A stretch of DNA of 64,000 bases from the IMG/VR virus record IMGVR_UViG_3300020154_000003, positions 124,001 to 188,000 of that record; one strand, written 5' to 3'. The first letter of the stretch is position 1; every line of letters starts with the position of its first letter. Under the pieces are notes generated by a model. The model had not been told where the DNA came from. It was given only the letters and a program-made list of their open reading frames with translations, and did not search any database. Shown piece by piece: positions 978-34,136 of the stretch. The position numbers were made by a program, and so were the translations under genes.

Positions 978-1002
978 AACATTTTTTAGATTTGCACGTA
1001 TA
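977..1002 (+). promoter_or_regulatory. ECF-type promoter (AAC-N16-CGTA) upstream of the Pth2-like/tRNA operon
   Basis: AAAC at 977-980 and CGTATA at 997-1002, with the same 16-nt spacing as the repeated promoters at 34-54 kb. Confidence 0.6.
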
Positions 1003-1022
1003 TATAGAAAACACCAAAAATC

Positions 1023-1403
1023 ATGAAAAAAGAACTGTAGATTTCCAATCCTAGCGATCTTAAACTGGTAACCATTACCAGACAAGACCTACCAATGGGC
1101 GCAATCATTGCCCAAACAGTACATTCAACAGCATCATTTGCCATCCAGTACCCTGACAAATTTCGTCATTGGGAACAAACATCAAACTACGTAGCGTGTC
1201 TAGCTGCAAAGGATGAGCAAGAACTACTCAAGTATTACGACCGATTAATAAAGGCAGGAGCCGATGTGGTATTATTCCGTGAACCCGACATGGATAACCA
1301 AGCAACATCCCTATGCTTTTACGGCACTCCTGAGTTTCGGAAAATTACAAGCAGTTTACCATTAATGTTCAAGCAGAAGAAGGAGGTGGCTATGGCAGCA
1401 TAA
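1023..1403 (+). CDS. peptidyl-tRNA hydrolase 2 (Pth2)-fold protein with in-frame TAG at codon 6 (1038-1040)
   Basis: From ATG 1023 reads MKKEL*ISNPSDLKLVTITRQDLPMGAIIAQTVH...FREPDMDNQATSLC. The Pth2 N-terminal strand (KLVxxxRxDL...AQxxH) lies upstream of the ORF-track start at 1095 and in frame with it. Confidence 0.75.
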
Positions 1404-1411
1404 TTTCACAT

Positions 1412-1486
1412 CCTTTGGTAGCTTAAGCTGGTTAAAGCCCATGACTGATCCTCATGGAGATGGTTGTTCGAATCGGCCCCAAAGGA
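1412..1486 (+). tRNA. tRNA-Ile(GAT), atypical C37/C38, no encoded CCA
   Basis: Cloverleaf: acceptor CCTTTGG/CCAAAGG, D stem GCTT/AAGC, anticodon stem CATGA/TCATG with loop CTGATCC, T arm GGTTG-TTCGAAT-CGGCC. Confidence 0.75.
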
Positions 1487-1493
1487 CTTAAAA

Positions 1494-1573
1494 CCTCGTG
1501 TAGCTTAGTGGTCTAAAGCAGCATACTTATAATATGCCTATCGTCTTAAACGGTTCGAATCCTACCACGAGGA
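1494..1573 (+). tRNA. tRNA-Ile(TAT)-like gene with a disrupted/inserted T stem
   Basis: Acceptor CCTCGTG/CACGAGG, anticodon stem GCATA/TATGC with loop CTTATAA, T loop GGTTCGAATCC. The 5' T strand is GT-CTTAAAC-GG instead of the GTAGG needed to pair with CCTAC. Confidence 0.65.
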
Positions 1574-1585
1574 CTTTAAAAAAAT

Positions 1586-1658
1586 GAGAGTATGGCTCAG
1601 TGGTTAGAGCAAGGACTTCTAAACTCCTAGGTCGTGGGTTCGAATCCCACTACTCTCT
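1586..1658 (+). tRNA. amber suppressor tRNA (anticodon CTA at 1619-1621)
   Basis: Acceptor GAGAGTA/TACTCTC, D stem GCTC/GAGC, anticodon stem AGGAC/CTCCT (C.C mismatch at 31-39) with loop TTCTAAA, variable loop AGGTC, T arm GTGGG-TTCGAAT-CCCAC. Confidence 0.8.
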
Positions 1659-1677: not shown

Positions 1678-2205
1678 ATGAAAACAATTAGAGAAACAAG
1701 TCAACCAGTAATCGATGCTCTTTTGAAGCATGTCGATCTTTGTGATGATCATTAGATACTTGAACCTTCAGCAGGCTTCGGTAATCTTGCGGATGGAATC
1801 GTAAGAGCGTGTCCTGACATAAAAGTTGATTGTGTCGAATTGAATGAACGCAACGTACAAATTCTCAAGGAGAAAGGGCATAACGTAGTTGGTCGTGACT
1901 TCTTTCACTTCAAAACAGAAAAGAAGTACTGGTACATCATCGCAGCACCAAACTTCAAAGACAATATTGATGTCGAACACATCATGAAGATGTACACACA
2001 TCTTAGTAATGGTGGAACGATAGTATCACTCACATCCCCGTACTGGATGACAGGAAACTCTGAACGTCAGATTAAACTCAGGTACTGGTTAGCAGATAAA
2101 AATTATAAAATTGAAATGCTTCCAGACAACACTTTCATGGAAGATGGTCAGACTGTTCCAACGTGCATTATTGTAATACGTAAATCTTACTGTGATGGGA
2201 ATTGA
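1678..2205 (+). CDS. class I SAM-dependent methyltransferase with in-frame TAG at 1753-1755
   Basis: From ATG 1678 reads MKTIRE...CDDH*ILEPSAGFGNLAD...VDCVELNE...GRDFF...IIAAPNF...GGTIVSL. Motif I (LEPSAGxG) lies upstream of the ORF-track start at 1840 and in frame with it. Confidence 0.8.
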
Positions 2206-9325: not shown

Positions 9326-10204
9326 TTACCACATTACTGGTATTAAGTTTCTCAAAAAATCTTTATCCTGAGTGAAAATAGGTGGCTCAACGACTTGCCA
9401 AGTATTTCTCTTGATATAGTACTGGCCAACCCTTTCCAAATTCGGATGTTGATCATCATCTATCAACCATTTAACATTATCTGCAGTTTTAGGATTTTTC
9501 AAAGCAAGTTTGGCACGATCTTCGGGAAGTGCAACCCATGTCTCTTGTTTAAGAATTACCCTTCCTCTTTTTTGACCTACCGGATAATCATTCCAGTTCT
9601 GACCCTTTTTCCAAATCAGGTCTTGAAGTTGATCAGTGCTCTTCCCATTCAATTCCTTGTGTGAATATAGTGATTGAGCAACGGCCTGAATGGAGTTTCT
9701 GGTTGCATCTTGCTGCCTCCAAATGAAGTAATTAATGACTTCCTCTGATGGTGGAATGGTAAATAACCTGCTGTCAAACATTGCTGTTTTAAAATTTTCA
9801 ATATCCTCTGCAATCGGTATTAAGGCAGTTTCCTTAAACCAACGAGCAAGTCGTAATTGATTGAATTTAGCGGTAGCGAGACTCGATGAAATGGATGCCA
9901 TTTTCTGAACGTTACCATCAAACCATGCTGAGGTGGTTGTCTTTTCAAAATCACTCAATAGAATCGAAATTTCATCTGACTGGACATAACCAAATTTGGC
10001 TCCTTGAATGTTATCACAGAGATATTTTGTGGTTTCATCCATATCCTTAATTAAGTCCGCATCGAATGGTCGCTTAAGTCCACGAGTATAGGTGTGAAAT
10101 GCCTTCCCATCGATCCTTATCATTGTATAGGTTCTTCTAGGAAGATAGGTTCTACTTCTATCCTCATAATAGGTTTTCATTCTGTCGCCAAGTTCATCTT
10201 TCAT
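9326..10204 (-). CDS. thg1: tRNA(His) guanylyltransferase Thg1 / Thg1-like 3'-5' polymerase
   Basis: RIDGKAFHTYT, YVQSDEIS, FDSR, YFIWRQQDATRNS. Confidence 0.93.
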   Translation of the reverse strand: MKDELGDRMKTYYEDRSRTYLPRRTYTMIRIDGKAFHTYTRGLKRPFDADLIKDMDETTKYLCDNIQGAKFGYVQSDEISILLSDFEKTTTSAWFDGNVQKMASISSSLATAKFNQLRLARWFKETALIPIAEDIENFKTAMFDSRLFTIPPSEEVINYFIWRQQDATRNSIQAVAQSLYSHKELNGKSTDQLQDLIWKKGQNWNDYPVGQKRGRVILKQETWVALPEDRAKLALKNPKTADNVKWLIDDDQHPNLERVGQYYIKRNTWQVVEPPIFTQDKDFLRNLIPVMW

Positions 10205-10503: not shown

Positions 10504-11379
10504 ATGACACTAATATTAGACCTCACCAAAGGAGTCACCGAAACCACAGCATACAAAGCATGGAAATTTCCGGGTGGCGAAATTCACTTCAAGTTCTCAG
10601 ATGAATTTATACGTTGGCTAAATTCTCACAGATCGCTCGAAATTCAGACCAGAATAAACACCTCAGATGATTTTCTGTTTTTACTTCTAGTAATTGATAC
10701 GTTGAAGAAGGATTATCAGAATCACACCATCGATGTTTTCATCCCTTATATGCTTTACCAGCAAGCAGATAGAGATTTCAGTGTTGGCGAATGTTTTAGT
10801 CTCAGAACTGTAACCAAAATTCTGAATGCCATTGGTGTAAATTCATACACGATTTACGATCCCCACTCAGATGTTACTCCAGCTTTACTTCAGAACTGTA
10901 AGGTTATCGACAATAGCGATTACATCAAATGGGTGCTTGAGCAACTACCTTCATTAGGTAAATATTCCAATGGATTCAACGTTGTTATGCTTTCCCCCGA
11001 TGCTGGTGCATATAAGAAAATCTATAAACTCGCCAATAAAATTCAATTCAAGGGTGAGGTTGCGTCAGCCAATAAATCTCGTTCGATTTCAACTGGAAAT
11101 ATAGACTCATTGGAACTGTCGAAACATGATTTCGAAGGTAAGGATGTGTTGATTGTTGATGACATCTGTATCGGTGGTAGAACCTTTATTGAACTAGCAA
11201 AGAAGTTGAAGGAACGGAATGTTGGTGATTTATATCTCGCAATTTCTCACGGCATTTTTAGTAACGGATATGATGAACTAAGTCTCTACTACAAAAAGGT
11301 ATTCACTACTAACAGTAGAAAAAATGAATACAATCACGAATTAATTTCAACCTTTAACATTTTTGGCGATAATGACTGA
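10504..11379 (+). CDS. ribose-phosphate pyrophosphokinase-like protein (candidate NARP1 Adps)
   Basis: FPGGEIH, PYMLYQQADR, DPHSDV, SPDAGA, IVDDICIGGRTF, HGIFS. Confidence 0.88.
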   Translation: MTLILDLTKGVTETTAYKAWKFPGGEIHFKFSDEFIRWLNSHRSLEIQTRINTSDDFLFLLLVIDTLKKDYQNHTIDVFIPYMLYQQADRDFSVGECFSLRTVTKILNAIGVNSYTIYDPHSDVTPALLQNCKVIDNSDYIKWVLEQLPSLGKYSNGFNVVMLSPDAGAYKKIYKLANKIQFKGEVASANKSRSISTGNIDSLELSKHDFEGKDVLIVDDICIGGRTFIELAKKLKERNVGDLYLAISHGIFSNGYDELSLYYKKVFTTNSRKNEYNHELISTFNIFGDND

Positions 11380-11791: not shown

Positions 11792-12213
11792 TAGTATTTG
11801 TGGCGACTCCATTTTGGAGTTTTGATAAAGAAGTGTCTGAACGAAGAACTGCGATAATAAGCAAGTATTGCGGGCAATTATTGCGTGAGGGTATTATGTG
11901 TACTTCGCCAGTTGTTTTTGGAGTAACTATACTGAAATATACTGACCTACCGGGAAATTTTGCCTTTTGGGATAAACTTAGTTTTACCACTTTGGCAGCT
12001 TCAGATGTGCTACACGTACTTATGCTCCCCGGATGGGATGAATCGAGAGGCGTTAGTGAGGAAATAAAATTCGCACTAGAAAGAAAAATACCAATAAAAT
12101 ATTTTGATGTTTCCGAAGATAGATATGGCAGTCCCACTTTCAAAGAAAATAGCAGATCAATAGCTATTGGCAACCTAATAAGAAAAATTAATCATAAAAA
12201 AAATAACCCATGA
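11788..12213 (+). CDS. DUF1937 / nucleoside 2-deoxyribosyltransferase-like protein
   Basis: VATPF...SPV...FW...LMLPGWDESRGVSEEIKFA. Confidence 0.7.
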   Translation: MIVFVATPFWSFDKEVSERRTAIISKYCGQLLREGIMCTSPVVFGVTILKYTDLPGNFAFWDKLSFTTLAASDVLHVLMLPGWDESRGVSEEIKFALERKIPIKYFDVSEDRYGSPTFKENSRSIAIGNLIRKINHKKNNP

Positions 12214-13781
12214 AAATGAATCCATTTTTAATGGCTGACTTTTACAAGATCGGTCACCCATTTCAATACCCCAAAGGTACAAATCTTGTTTATGCTAACT
12301 TAACACCACGTAATTCCAGAATCAAGGGAGTTGACAAGATGGTGTTCTTTGGCCTTCAATATTTTATCAAGCATTACTTGATTAAGTATTTCAACGAAAA
12401 CTTCTTCGATCTTCCGAAAGACGAAGTGATGAATTCATACAGAAGAAGAATTCTCACCTCATTAGGTTCCGATCTACCTTATTATGATCACATTGCAAAT
12501 CTTCACGATTTGGGTTATCTCCCAATCGAGATTAAAGCTTTGCCAGAAGGAAGCAAGGTGAAGATGCGTGTGCCAGTACTGACTGTCAAAAATACACACC
12601 CTGAATTTTATTGGTTGACCAATTTCATAGAAACAATCATGTCCGATATTGTGTGGCAACCATGTACCTCCGCTACTATTGCCCACGAATACCGTAAACT
12701 TCTCAACAAGTTTGGTGAAGAAACTGGTATGCACCCCGACTTTATTCAATGGCAAGGTCACGACTTCAGCTTTAGAGGTATGAGTTCCTTCGAGAGTGCA
12801 TATACTTCAGCTATGGGGCACTTATTATCTTTTACTGGCACTGACACCATTCCGGGGATTGATGCTCTTGAAACGTATTACAATGCTAATGCGGATTACG
12901 AATTAATTGGTGGTAGTGTCAATGCTACCGAACACAGTGTTATGTGTGCTGGTGAAAAGGATTCAGAGTACGAGACTTACAGACGTTTGATCTGTGATGT
13001 ATACCCTAAAGGCATCGTATCAATTGTTTCAGATACTTGGGATTTATGGTTCGTACTAACTCAGATCATACCTCAATTGAAAGAAGCGATTCTCAATAGG
13101 GAAGGTAAGGTTGTTATTCGTCCTGACAGTGGCGATCCTGTTAAAATTCTTACAGGTTACTTCAAGAACGAATTGACTGTGATCGATGGCAAATATTACC
13201 GTAACACTGATGTTGATGCTCATGATATTGACGCAACTAAGCTAACGCTTAAAGCAGGTGCCAAAGAAGTTGGTGAAGCTGAAAGAAAAGGTGTTATTGA
13301 GGTTCTTTGGGACGTGTTTGGTGGAACCATCACTGACAAAGGTTACAAACTACTGGACGAACATATTGGGGCAATTTACGGTGACAGTATCACACTTACT
13401 CGTGCAGAAGAAATTTGTCAGCGATTGAAAGATAAGGGATTTGCTTCACAAGTTGTACTTGGTATCGGTAGCTACACTTATCAGTACAACACCAGAGATA
13501 CCTTTGGTACTGCAATGAAGTCTACCTATGTTGAAGTTAACGGTGAAGGAAGAGAAATTTTCAAATCTCCTGCGACTGATGATGGAACTAAAAAATCTGC
13601 CAGAGGCTTGCTGAAAGTTGTGAAAGATGAGGACGGTGAATTCGTACTTGTAGATCAGGTGTCTTGGGAAGAAGAGGCTGAGGGAGAATTAACACCAGTC
13701 TTTAAGGATGGTAAGTTACTTGTTGACCAGTCATTGAGCGAAATAAGGGCAAGATTGAGTGAAGTAGTAGAGGTAGTATAA
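12210..13781 (+). CDS. nicotinamide phosphoribosyltransferase-like protein (candidate NARP1 Namat)
   Basis: ADFYKIGH..QYP, HDFSFRG, ATEHSVM, SIVSDTWD, IRPDSGDP, IYGDSIT, K.P.TD.G.KKSARG. Confidence 0.92.
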   Translation: MKMNPFLMADFYKIGHPFQYPKGTNLVYANLTPRNSRIKGVDKMVFFGLQYFIKHYLIKYFNENFFDLPKDEVMNSYRRRILTSLGSDLPYYDHIANLHDLGYLPIEIKALPEGSKVKMRVPVLTVKNTHPEFYWLTNFIETIMSDIVWQPCTSATIAHEYRKLLNKFGEETGMHPDFIQWQGHDFSFRGMSSFESAYTSAMGHLLSFTGTDTIPGIDALETYYNANADYELIGGSVNATEHSVMCAGEKDSEYETYRRLICDVYPKGIVSIVSDTWDLWFVLTQIIPQLKEAILNREGKVVIRPDSGDPVKILTGYFKNELTVIDGKYYRNTDVDAHDIDATKLTLKAGAKEVGEAERKGVIEVLWDVFGGTITDKGYKLLDEHIGAIYGDSITLTRAEEICQRLKDKGFASQVVLGIGSYTYQYNTRDTFGTAMKSTYVEVNGEGREIFKSPATDDGTKKSARGLLKVVKDEDGEFVLVDQVSWEEEAEGELTPVFKDGKLLVDQSLSEIRARLSEVVEVV

Positions 13782-15552: not shown

Positions 15553-16153
15553 AAAAAATGTGTGGAAGCCAGCTTCTCTGGATGTGATGCGTCAAATTGC
15601 AAACGCTGAGAAAGATTGGGCATCCTTACTGAAATCGGAGAACACATATAAAAAATTTTTCAAGAAATTGCTTTTTTGGCGTAAACCAAAAACACAATTC
15701 GAAGGAGTTACGTTTCCGGTAGTAAGAAAAGTCTTTGCTAATTTGATGGCTAACGATATTGTTGGAGTACAACCAATGGCAGCACCATCCAATGGTCTTT
15801 ATGCGAATTACATCACAATAACATTCAAACTTGGGAAACCAATTAAGCATAAAATTGTTGGAAAGACACCCGGAGAATATTTAATAAATTTAATACATGC
15901 TTGGAATAGTTTGCCTGATCGATTTGTGAAAGAGGACATTGTTGGTTACTATCACTATAAACTCGCGGCACTGCTTAAGGTTTATCCTACCATCCTCGAT
16001 GAGTATGAAACTGACGATTACACAAAAGATTTGATGTTTGTATTGGAAGGACAGAAGCCCAAACATAAATTTGAAGGTTACAAACCGATACCCCAAATTT
16101 TAAATGGTAATGATGGACATATACCGTTATGGCCTATTCCAAATAAAATATAG
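15539..16153 (+). CDS. protein containing a T4 gp23 major-capsid (Gol-region)-like segment
   Basis: FPVVRKVFANLMANDIVGVQPMAAPSNG. Confidence 0.65.
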   Translation: MFVSKKNVWKPASLDVMRQIANAEKDWASLLKSENTYKKFFKKLLFWRKPKTQFEGVTFPVVRKVFANLMANDIVGVQPMAAPSNGLYANYITITFKLGKPIKHKIVGKTPGEYLINLIHAWNSLPDRFVKEDIVGYYHYKLAALLKVYPTILDEYETDDYTKDLMFVLEGQKPKHKFEGYKPIPQILNGNDGHIPLWPIPNKI

Positions 16154-16157
16154 CAAA

Positions 16158-16997
16158 ATGAAGACTAACAAAAAACAAAAACATATTGCAGTATTATTTT
16201 CCTCAGGATTGGATTCAACATATCTCATCTATAAAAATCTGAAGGAAGGACATATAGTCCAACCCTATTATGTTGACATTAAAAACAATGAGAATAAGCG
16301 GATAGTGGAATTGCAAAACGTGCAGAAGTTAACTGAATTATTCATTGAGGAATTTCCAAACATGCGATTCCATAAAACGTTGACTGAAGTTTCGGTTAAT
16401 ATTGAATGGGGTTGCGATCTTTTATTCACACAAATCCCTGTGTGGTTGTTTAGTTTATCTTTCATAAGCAATCCGAATGTTCAGGAAATTCATATCGGTT
16501 ATGTTTCAAACGATGATGCAATTTCTTATATAGATGAAATAAAGAAATTTTATAAAGCACAGCAGTGGTTACATAGAGATAAACTTCCTAAACTTTGTTT
16601 CCCGCTTTTGAAAGAAACGAAATCAAGTATGATGGAGGAACTACCAGTAAAGTACAGAACCTATATTACTTCTTGTGAAAATCCAACTTTAAAACCATAT
16701 TTTATTAAAAGTGGAAGTCGAAGAATCCAGTACTTCGAACCTTGTGGTACATGTGTCGCTTGTAATAGGGTTATAAGAGAAAAATTAGATTACAATTTTC
16801 AATATAGAAAACTCATAGTAGATCACTATAAAAAATTGGAGGAAGCACAATATTTTGCACGATTTAAAGAGCATCATCCCAAAGAATATGATGGGATTTT
16901 GAAACTCATTGAAGAAACGAATAGTAATGCTTTTGAGCAGGTGTGGATAGAATCAGGTGGGGATGTTAAAGGAGGTTATGAAGCTGTAGGATGTTGA
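16158..16997 (+). CDS. QueC-like PP-loop ATPase
   Basis: AVLFSSGLDSTY, TSC, PCGTCVAC. Confidence 0.7.
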   Translation: MKTNKKQKHIAVLFSSGLDSTYLIYKNLKEGHIVQPYYVDIKNNENKRIVELQNVQKLTELFIEEFPNMRFHKTLTEVSVNIEWGCDLLFTQIPVWLFSLSFISNPNVQEIHIGYVSNDDAISYIDEIKKFYKAQQWLHRDKLPKLCFPLLKETKSSMMEELPVKYRTYITSCENPTLKPYFIKSGSRRIQYFEPCGTCVACNRVIREKLDYNFQYRKLIVDHYKKLEEAQYFARFKEHHPKEYDGILKLIEETNSNAFEQVWIESGGDVKGGYEAVGC

Positions 16998-33579: not shown

Positions 33580-34136
33580 ATGATTGATCTGGTACTGGTT
33601 AAATTATACGTAAATATCGTTAAATTGTTTCCAGTACCTATTTAATTTCGATTTTATTGAATAGATCAAGATACTGTAGTCTATTGATTCCGTAGAGTTT
33701 CACTTTTGTCCACATCCATTGAATATTCATAAATTCCTTTTCATTCCAATGGGTGTTCCAAGTAGGCACTTCGCTAAACTCAAATCCCTCAATCAGATAG
33801 ATTTTACCCCTTTGCAGGTCTTTAGGGGTCTTATATTGCTTATCCTCATCGGTATCATCATCAACACATATGATTCGATCTCCCACAGCCAGACCGAATT
33901 TCTCCAATAACTGCTTTTCTTCTTTTCTCGTCAATTTAGTCATCTTCTCCATTGTTTAGGTTGGTTAAGTAGAACATTCATTTTTACCAAATTCAAAAAA
34001 TTTCCCGGAAAAATTTTAGGGCTTTTTTCTAAACCTAAAAAAATTTCCCCAAAAAAAATTATAAAATTTTATAAAAGGAAGAGGTCGATTTTCTAGGGAG
34101 GAAAATATTTATTCATGTAGGGCCGACAGCCCTATA

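Follow-up and report, generated by a model that had tools for sequence, protein, structure and literature searches.

The tRNA gene at 1586-1658 most likely encodes a functional amber suppressor that decodes an early UAG in both of its flanking genes, the UAG serving in each as a gate. The upstream gene specifies a PTH2-type peptidyl-tRNA hydrolase and the downstream gene an adenine-methyltransferase-like protein. They lie in the window analysed here, a stretch of 64,000 nucleotides which corresponds to bases 124001-188000 of a 366,038-bp virus record (36% G+C); coordinates are those of the window unless stated otherwise. The PTH2 gene, a pair of tRNA-Ile-like genes, tRNA(CUA) and the methyltransferase gene would be carried on one transcript, and the two proteins would be made only if the suppressor were expressed, processed, charged by the host and able to beat release factor 1. 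Because both proteins would depend on a working suppressor, the UAGs would represent a translational gate or a form of dosage control and not a change of genetic code. The features concerned are listed below.

987..1004, plus strand: promoter-like motif, TAnnTTTG then GTATATA, roughly 20 nt upstream of the start of PTH2 (putative function)
1023..1403, plus strand: gene for a PTH2-type peptidyl-tRNA hydrolase (Pfam PTH2), predicted to be read through one in-frame TAG
1038..1040, plus strand: the PTH2 in-frame TAG, codon 6, followed by ATT
1412..1487, plus strand: tRNA-Ile(GAU)-like gene with pyrimidines at 37 and 38 (ARAGORN; Rfam, 46.7 bits; syntenic in relatives)
1494..1574, plus strand: tRNA-Ile(UAU) gene whose variable region is long (14 nt) and whose T stem pairs poorly (ARAGORN; Rfam, 45.6 bits)
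1586..1658, plus strand: amber suppressor tRNA(CUA) (Rfam, ARAGORN, alignment of relatives)
1616..1624, plus strand: C31, the loop UUCUAAA (anticodon 1619-1621) and C39, where the anticodon stem is open at its lower end
1678..2205, plus strand: adenine-methyltransferase-like gene, 175 aa, catalytic core only, with one in-frame TAG (Pfam, AlphaFold, dN/dS)
1753..1755, plus strand: the methyltransferase in-frame TAG, codon 26, followed by ATA and just before ILEPSAG (motif I)
Genome 123540-123613 (L106:363-436), 388 nt before window base 1: a second tRNA(CUA) (Rfam, 57.6 bits)

Anatomy of the cassette

The match of Rfam RF00005 to 1586-1658(+), at 67.1 bits (gathering score 29), is the top tRNA score within the window. 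CUA falls in the anticodon columns of the Rfam model and ARAGORN likewise reads CTA, so that the suppressor proposed in the initial annotation is a genuine CUA tRNA in the canonical register. The acceptor stem consists of G1-C72, A2-U71, G3-C70, A4-U69, G5-C68, U6-A67 and A7-U66, with U73 as discriminator. In the anticodon stem, A27-U43, G28-C42, G29-C41 and A30-U40 are followed by C31 (1616) facing C39 (1624). The D arm, with an 8-nt loop including G18-G19, and the T arm are standard, and the variable loop has 5 nt. The C31.C39 mismatch, the discriminator, the first three acceptor pairs and the string CUUCUAA, which occupies positions 31-37, all read as originally described. ARAGORN's name for the gene, 'tRNA-Pyl', is a label for CUA only. 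tRNA-Pyl has a three-nt variable loop, a 6-bp anticodon stem and a small D loop without G18-G19; the D and variable loops given above and an anticodon stem of 4-5 positions led to rejection of this identity. Exact matches to the tRNA were not found in IMG/VR.

The loop string had raised the question of whether folding would place UCU, as in tRNA-Arg, at positions 34-36. This register has a pairing probability of zero (ViennaRNA) and the shifted structure is at least 6 kcal/mol worse; the CUA register is kept. For the unmodified RNA alone, the 4-bp anticodon stem is predicted to be marginal, with a pairing probability of about 12% (ViennaRNA). The general hallmarks of a tRNA (four helices, U8, G18-G19, T loop, U33, purine at 37) are all present. 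Covariation among 19 relatives speaks for the cloverleaf, with 95% of cells paired and double changes in 15 pairs, and none of 500 shuffles matches the score. Decoding of a quadruplet (UAGA) through a 9-nt loop was ruled out because the PTH2 and methyltransferase frames both continue unchanged past the TAG.

The genes follow one another in the order PTH2(UAG), two tRNA-Ile-like genes, tRNA(CUA) and methyltransferase(UAG). Because the gaps between them are only 6-20 nt, the cassette is probably a single transcript. The promoter-like pattern has its sole exact match in the window at 987..1004, and a similar motif occurs in related loci. The two tRNA-Ile-like genes lie directly upstream of the suppressor and are syntenic in related phages; the GAU-like gene has C37, C38 and a C1-G72 start.

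Residue 13, at which the Pfam PTH2 match begins, precedes the first code-11 ATG, and the gene is under purifying selection on both sides of its TAG. An N-terminal MK..-TAG-I/V pattern is found in all 17 PTH2-bearing related loci save L118, the TAG standing 2-5 codons after the ATG; L118 has a TAA, at codon 9. Where the window's PTH2 has an internal Met, L024 has Leu. The codons which follow the gating TAGs are ATT, ATA, GTA and GTT, never ATG, GTG or TTG, and the base directly behind the TAG is in every case a purine, a context that Bossi (1983) is reported to have found to favour suppression.

The methyltransferase gene starts 20 nt downstream of tRNA(CUA), and its TAG directly precedes ILEPSAGFG (…DDH-X-ILEPSAGFGNLADGIVR). 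Two Pfam matches, MTS (residues 14-100) and RrnaAD (7-92), span the TAG. A confident AlphaFold model (pLDDT 88.7) most resembles, at TM 0.72-0.76 on the query, the catalytic domains of two adenine DNA methyltransferases, CamA and M.TaqI; motif IV is APNF and there is no target-recognition domain. Comparison with L021 gives 8 synonymous and 0 non-synonymous changes in codons 1-25, before the TAG, and a dN/dS of 0.046 with a dS of about 1.3 in codons 27-170, the TAG itself being unchanged. Against the more distant sisters L024 and L025, dN/dS upstream of the TAG is ~0.2. The methyltransferase is thus under purifying selection on each side of its TAG. PHROG matches include giant proteins into which a methyltransferase domain is fused.

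Related loci and the genetic code of the phage

Protein searches and two contig scans brought together about 20 distinct related phage loci, which retain the PTH2/suppressor/methyltransferase arrangement; the homologue search for the methyltransferase covered proteins of 96-306 aa. The window's cassette itself is carried by the L021 and L022 contigs. The methyltransferase TAG occupies three independent positions, one per clade: codon 26 (the window's clade, L023 and L188), codon 17 (…FM-TAG-VADIQDGHKVLEPSAG) or codon 10 (…ETSH-TAG-VIQ). These gated sites are variable surface positions, at helix ends or in loops of the AlphaFold model. A CUA tRNA lies within the fetched flank at 17 of the 19 assessable TAG-bearing loci, the exceptions being L121 and L187, and at none of the loci of 10 close TAG-less methyltransferase homologues. 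More distant homologues in ~40 kb phages have neither TAG nor suppressor.

L118 provides a natural control. It has TAA at PTH2 codon 9 and at methyltransferase codon 129, a canonical tRNA(UUA) at L118 4383-4455 and no CUA tRNA at the locus. The type of stop thus switches together with the tRNA anticodon. The same contig encodes two tRNAs of 59 and 69 bits (L118:1572-1645 and 1786-1862) with 5-bp anticodon stems and 9-nt loops, CCUUAAAAA and CUUUAAAAC, which present UUA when counted from the 5' side and are labelled Leu(UAA) by ARAGORN. Other unusual tRNA genes occur in the related phages. In tRNA-shaped genes situated between suppressor and methyltransferase (L109:2190-2266, L112:2272-2348, L122:1246-1322, L116:2271-2347, L017:2504-2580, L111:611-688), a 7-8 bp hairpin with a GAAA or UUCG tetraloop takes the place of the whole anticodon arm and leaves no anticodon loop. 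The tRNA clusters also contain intron-bearing tRNA genes, interrupted by 60-200 nt either within the anticodon loop or after it (L023:3505-3900, L017:2580-3000, L118:1916-2058).

The initial annotation had placed the suppressor in the setting of recoded phages. This does not hold for the genome, which uses the standard code: coding coverage by greedy ORF cover is 0.901 with code 11 and 0.900 with TAG as sense, and TAG, the rarest stop (TAA 373, TGA 122, TAG 42), terminates 42 of 537 ORFs (~8%). TAG was accordingly translated as X or Q only within individual frames. Early in-frame TAG patterns are no commoner genome-wide than early TGA or TAA patterns, and a TAG-recoded (code 15) genome was rejected on both counts. 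Pfam domains span a TAG in only one of 16 candidate TAG-containing frames, that of the methyltransferase; the 15 further frames in the 366 kb have no Pfam domain across a TAG. Because neither these frames nor the early-TAG patterns gave support elsewhere, gating is considered local to PTH2 and the methyltransferase. Moreover, 38 genes of at least 80 aa have TAG as their stop, and back-up stops are not in excess near these terminal TAGs, so that an efficient suppressor would be costly. Like the marginal anticodon stem predicted for the unmodified RNA, this weighs against a suppressor that is both strong and global, and an adaptation of the genome to global suppression was rejected for want of surplus back-up stops.

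ARAGORN finds 54 tRNA genes, nearly all at 89-126 kb of the genome, which together cover all amino acids; nearly all lack an encoded CCA and have C directly after the discriminator. They include the second tRNA(CUA), ~2 kb upstream of 1586-1658, with a fully paired stem bottom (U31-A39), C32, A37-A38 and A73; no TAG-containing gene lies beside it. The phage therefore carries both types of arm, open at 31/39 and canonical. A further ARAGORN call, tRNA-Arg(CCG) at 33954-34038 (-), is probably a false positive: the sequence is A/T-rich and folds weakly (-13 kcal/mol), and Rfam does not match it at the gathering score. Encoded nearby (9326-10204 (-), 10504-11379, 12210-13781, 16104-16997) are a Thg1-like tRNA-His guanylyltransferase, a PRPP-synthetase-like protein, a nicotinamide phosphoribosyltransferase and a QueC-like protein, a neighbourhood of tRNA repair and NAD salvage.

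The 25 nt upstream of 317 ORFs are not enriched in Shine-Dalgarno sequences (9.1% against a background of 9.1%), and leaders are A-rich. This lack of enrichment, together with a tRNA match to a Cellulophaga phage (see below), suggests a Bacteroidota host; promoter motifs gave no significant indication of host.

The anticodon arm and the inserted residue

An open bottom pair in the anticodon stem is common among these suppressors. In an alignment of 19 distinct CUA tRNAs from the window's phage group and from the phage XacN1, position 31/39 is non-Watson-Crick in 12 (A.C in 6, C.A in 3, C.C in 2 and U.U in 1), against 5 of 99 among the remaining tRNAs of those loci (Fisher p 2.7e-8, relatedness uncorrected) and 0 of 29 tRNAs in one bacterial genome. 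It is accompanied by U32, and the seven CUA tRNAs with U31-A39 have C32. Position 27/43 is open in 6 of the 19 and paired (A27-U43) in the window's tRNA. Pairing in the acceptor, D and T helices amounts to 97-100%, with many double substitutions. The window's tRNA is identical (74/74) in L021 and L022, where dS in the adjoining coding sequence is about 0.9-1.3; its orthologue in L025 (62/74 identical) keeps C31/C39, and pairs 2-71, 28-42 and 49-65 have changed compensatorily. Because the mismatch recurs at this frequency and L025 retains it amid compensatory changes, an unpaired 31/39 with U32 looks like a selected property of many such suppressors, and the odd arm pointed out in the initial annotation proves to be a conserved feature.

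Plausibly, the open 31/39 position tunes decoding strength or acceptance by a synthetase. In E. coli amber suppressors, the identity of pair 31-39 shifts acceptance between LysRS and GlnRS; the pairs compared were Watson-Crick (A-U, G-C, U-A, C-G), with no C.C or A.C, and the window's host is probably not enterobacterial (PMC1483225). Opening of the top anticodon-stem pair, 27-43, can raise readthrough, according to work cited in PMC13092985. A shortened, 4-bp anticodon stem is linked there to the reading of stops, as may be the case here; those tRNAs, however, are open at 27-43 and have a near-cognate anticodon, whereas the window's tRNA is open at 31-39 and fully cognate. Since A27-U43 pairs in the latter, it was not assigned to the 27-43-open class.

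Descent from a tRNA-Arg, suggested initially on the basis of the 7-letter loop string, is not supported. The string is in the wrong register, and U occupies both position 20, in the D loop AGUGGUUA, and position 35, where the arginine identity nucleotides are A20 and C35. In pairwise comparison with 118 tRNAs, none of the tRNA-Arg(UCU) genes of the phage itself ranks within the top 18 for tRNA(CUA). Among cultured phages, blastn matches tRNA-Arg(UCU) of Raoultella phage Ro1 (59/73) and, equally, tRNA-Asn of Cellulophaga phage phi17:2 (59/73); the other best matches are tRNA-Arg of Citrobacter phage Tr1 and the XacN1 suppressors, and all share generic D and T arms. The same frame of D arm and T loop was sought in 185,579 species genomes and is found in 79 cellular tRNAs, comprising 51 CAU, 12 Thr, 6 Arg(UCG), 5 Val, 3 UUU (Lys-type), 1 Gly and 1 Asn.

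The initial annotation had doubted that the inserted residue is the glutamine typical of recoded phages, and rightly so: glutamine is not established. For all the close full-length homologues examined (P0002, P0003, P0006, P0009 and P0013), the DNA gives the database sequence only with TAG translated as Q. Because the gene caller read TAG as Q, this residue is not independent evidence, and the deduction of glutamine from these proteins was rejected. Public protein collections hold such translations from short contigs, which mimic evidence for glutamine, and they should be used with caution.

Sense residues at the columns aligned with the TAGs vary: P/K/A/L/D/S/Q at column 10 and K/Q/I/S/N at column 17. 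At column 26 the codon-10 clade has R and the codon-17 clade K, and more distant homologues have T/K/E/I/L/V/S/R. The R or K expected before ILEPSAG is therefore seen in two sister clades, before (I/V)LEPSAG, but the consensus that was hoped for from homologues did not emerge, since the columns are variable overall and name no residue.

Nor does the acceptor end resemble that of tRNA-Gln, which has U1.U72 or U1-A72 with A73 in the phage's own genes and U1-A72 with G73 in one bacterial tRNA-Gln; a tRNA-Gln-type end was rejected for 1586-1658. The phage has U73 in its tRNAs for Gly, Cys and Thr and in one for Asn, and the bacterial genome has it in its Gly, Cys and Thr tRNAs; within the phage genome, the acceptor of tRNA(CUA) is best matched by tRNA-Gly(UCC), at 14 of 17 positions. 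With U73, G1-C72 and G3-C70, the acceptor end belongs to the Gly/Cys/Thr class. In the anticodon, GlnRS and LysRS read C34 and U35, and E. coli laboratory amber suppressors are likewise CUA tRNAs prone to charging by one or the other (PMC1483225). The sister suppressors in the same slot have U73 (L025), G73 with C1-G72 (L024) or A73 (L023 and the codon-17 clade); because of this diversity, the inserted residue may vary between phages, or may not matter. In rough terms, glutamine is the foremost single candidate, with a probability well short of even; lysine comes next, level with the residues not named here taken together, and glycine is slightly less probable again, level with cysteine, threonine and asparagine combined.

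Pfam searches of the phage (PF00749, PF00152, PF00587, PF00472) gave no match for GlnRS/GluRS, an Asp/Asn/Lys-type class II synthetase, a class IIa synthetase or RF-1. Because the synthetase domains searched for are absent from the phage, tRNA(CUA) would be charged by a host synthetase.

Competing explanations and relation to known systems

The suppressor might be a general tool that reads UAG stops of host or phage, for takeover, for C-terminal extensions or as a step towards recoding, with the adjoining TAGs as mere passengers. TAG being the rarest stop fits a path of depletion followed by recoding (bioRxiv 10.1101/2021.08.26.457843), and the gated sites, variable and at the surface, would tolerate such passengers. 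A neutral TAG should, however, revert to sense, and here it has been kept at a dS of at least 1. Its recurrence at three methyltransferase positions and, in all lineages, within the first 3-6 codons of PTH2, the switch to TAA along with the anticodon, the absence in 366 kb of any other gene with a supported in-frame TAG, and terminal TAGs without surplus back-up stops also speak against this explanation, which is considered unlikely. Somewhat more doubtful still is the proposal that the C.C mismatch and the 4-bp stem make the 1586-1658 tRNA a paralogue that is crippled or inactive, and that the canonical-armed CUA tRNA 2 kb upstream does the decoding. The latter has the arm type of efficient laboratory suppressors (U31-A39, C32, A37-A38), and the weak anticodon stem of the former is predicted to compete with an alternative hairpin. 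Yet it is the former that is 100% conserved despite saturated synonymous divergence, scores higher in Rfam (67.1 against 57.6 bits) and holds a syntenic slot beside the methyltransferase in sister phages; its mismatch, moreover, takes four chemical forms among relatives in which the other stems keep their pairs by compensatory changes. We infer that decoding is by the 1586-1658 tRNA and not by the second copy.

Least probable of all is the absence of any readthrough, with the two genes being pseudogenes or starting internally or at non-canonical codons after the TAG, and the adjacency of the tRNA a coincidence. Code-11 frames do exist downstream, of 121 aa for the methyltransferase (TTG 1840) and 102 aa for PTH2 (ATG 1095), but motif I of the methyltransferase and the first strand of PTH2 would be missing from them. 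The internal Met of PTH2 is Leu in L024, the 25 codons before the methyltransferase TAG have changed only synonymously, and the codons after the TAGs are never the start codons ATG, GTG or TTG. For PTH2, a mini-ORF might conceivably end at the TAG with restart at the adjacent AUU or GUN codon.

The preferred reading, decoding of both early UAGs by the neighbouring suppressor, leaves room for ideas about purpose. Coupling the level of peptidyl-tRNA hydrolase to that of suppression could, speculatively, be a form of damage control, and an action of the methyltransferase on tRNA is an equally speculative reason for gating it. It is conceivable, if rather improbable, that the cassette is a self-contained translational switch, shared by a whole group of large phages, in which a suppressor and two stop-gated enzymes acting on the translation machinery form a feedback loop sensing suppression against release factor 1. 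The hydrolase would clear peptidyl-tRNA, the adenine methyltransferase core might modify tRNA or another RNA, and suppressor strength, or the choice of synthetase, would be tuned through the unpaired 31/39. Such a gate could be rebuilt with another stop codon, as in the TAA/UUA version of L118.

A translation-factor gene with an early in-frame stop has a precedent in E. coli prfB (release factor 2), the output of which reports termination efficiency. prfB, however, uses a +1 frameshift at UGA and no suppressor tRNA, whereas here the same frame continues past the UAG. Suppressor tRNAs in phages, and the gating of late genes by stop codons, are already known (bioRxiv 10.1101/2021.08.26.457843; PMC9523058). 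In the code 15 crAss-like and Lak phages, as here, the phage encodes a tRNA(CUA) and its host uses the standard code, and in-frame UAGs have been proposed as a tRNA-dependent gate (bioRxiv 10.1101/2021.08.26.457843; PMC9523058). Unlike those phages, the present one has a standard-code genome in which only two genes are gated, by one UAG near each start; the targets are translation- or nucleic-acid-related genes next to the tRNA and not lysis or structural genes, and glutamine is not supported. The Xanthomonas jumbo phage XacN1, which also combines a standard code with a large tRNA set, has two tRNA-Sup(CUA) genes for which its authors found no targets (PMC5852040). Its CUA tRNAs are 86% identical to the present one over 56 nt and are also open at 31/39 (C.A), and at 27/43. 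No methyltransferase or PTH2 lies beside the XacN1 suppressors, whereas targets are identifiable in the window's phage group. A full-text literature search found no description of an amber-gated PTH2/methyltransferase cassette.

The purpose of suppressor tRNAs in large phages of standard code has so far been unclear, and the cassette would supply explicit targets for them. Its conserved architecture and the natural control, in which stop codon and anticodon change together, make the function directly testable. Position 31/39 of the anticodon arm would be a recurrent, selected feature of natural suppressors, and stop-codon gating could act on just two genes and not on a whole late-gene block.
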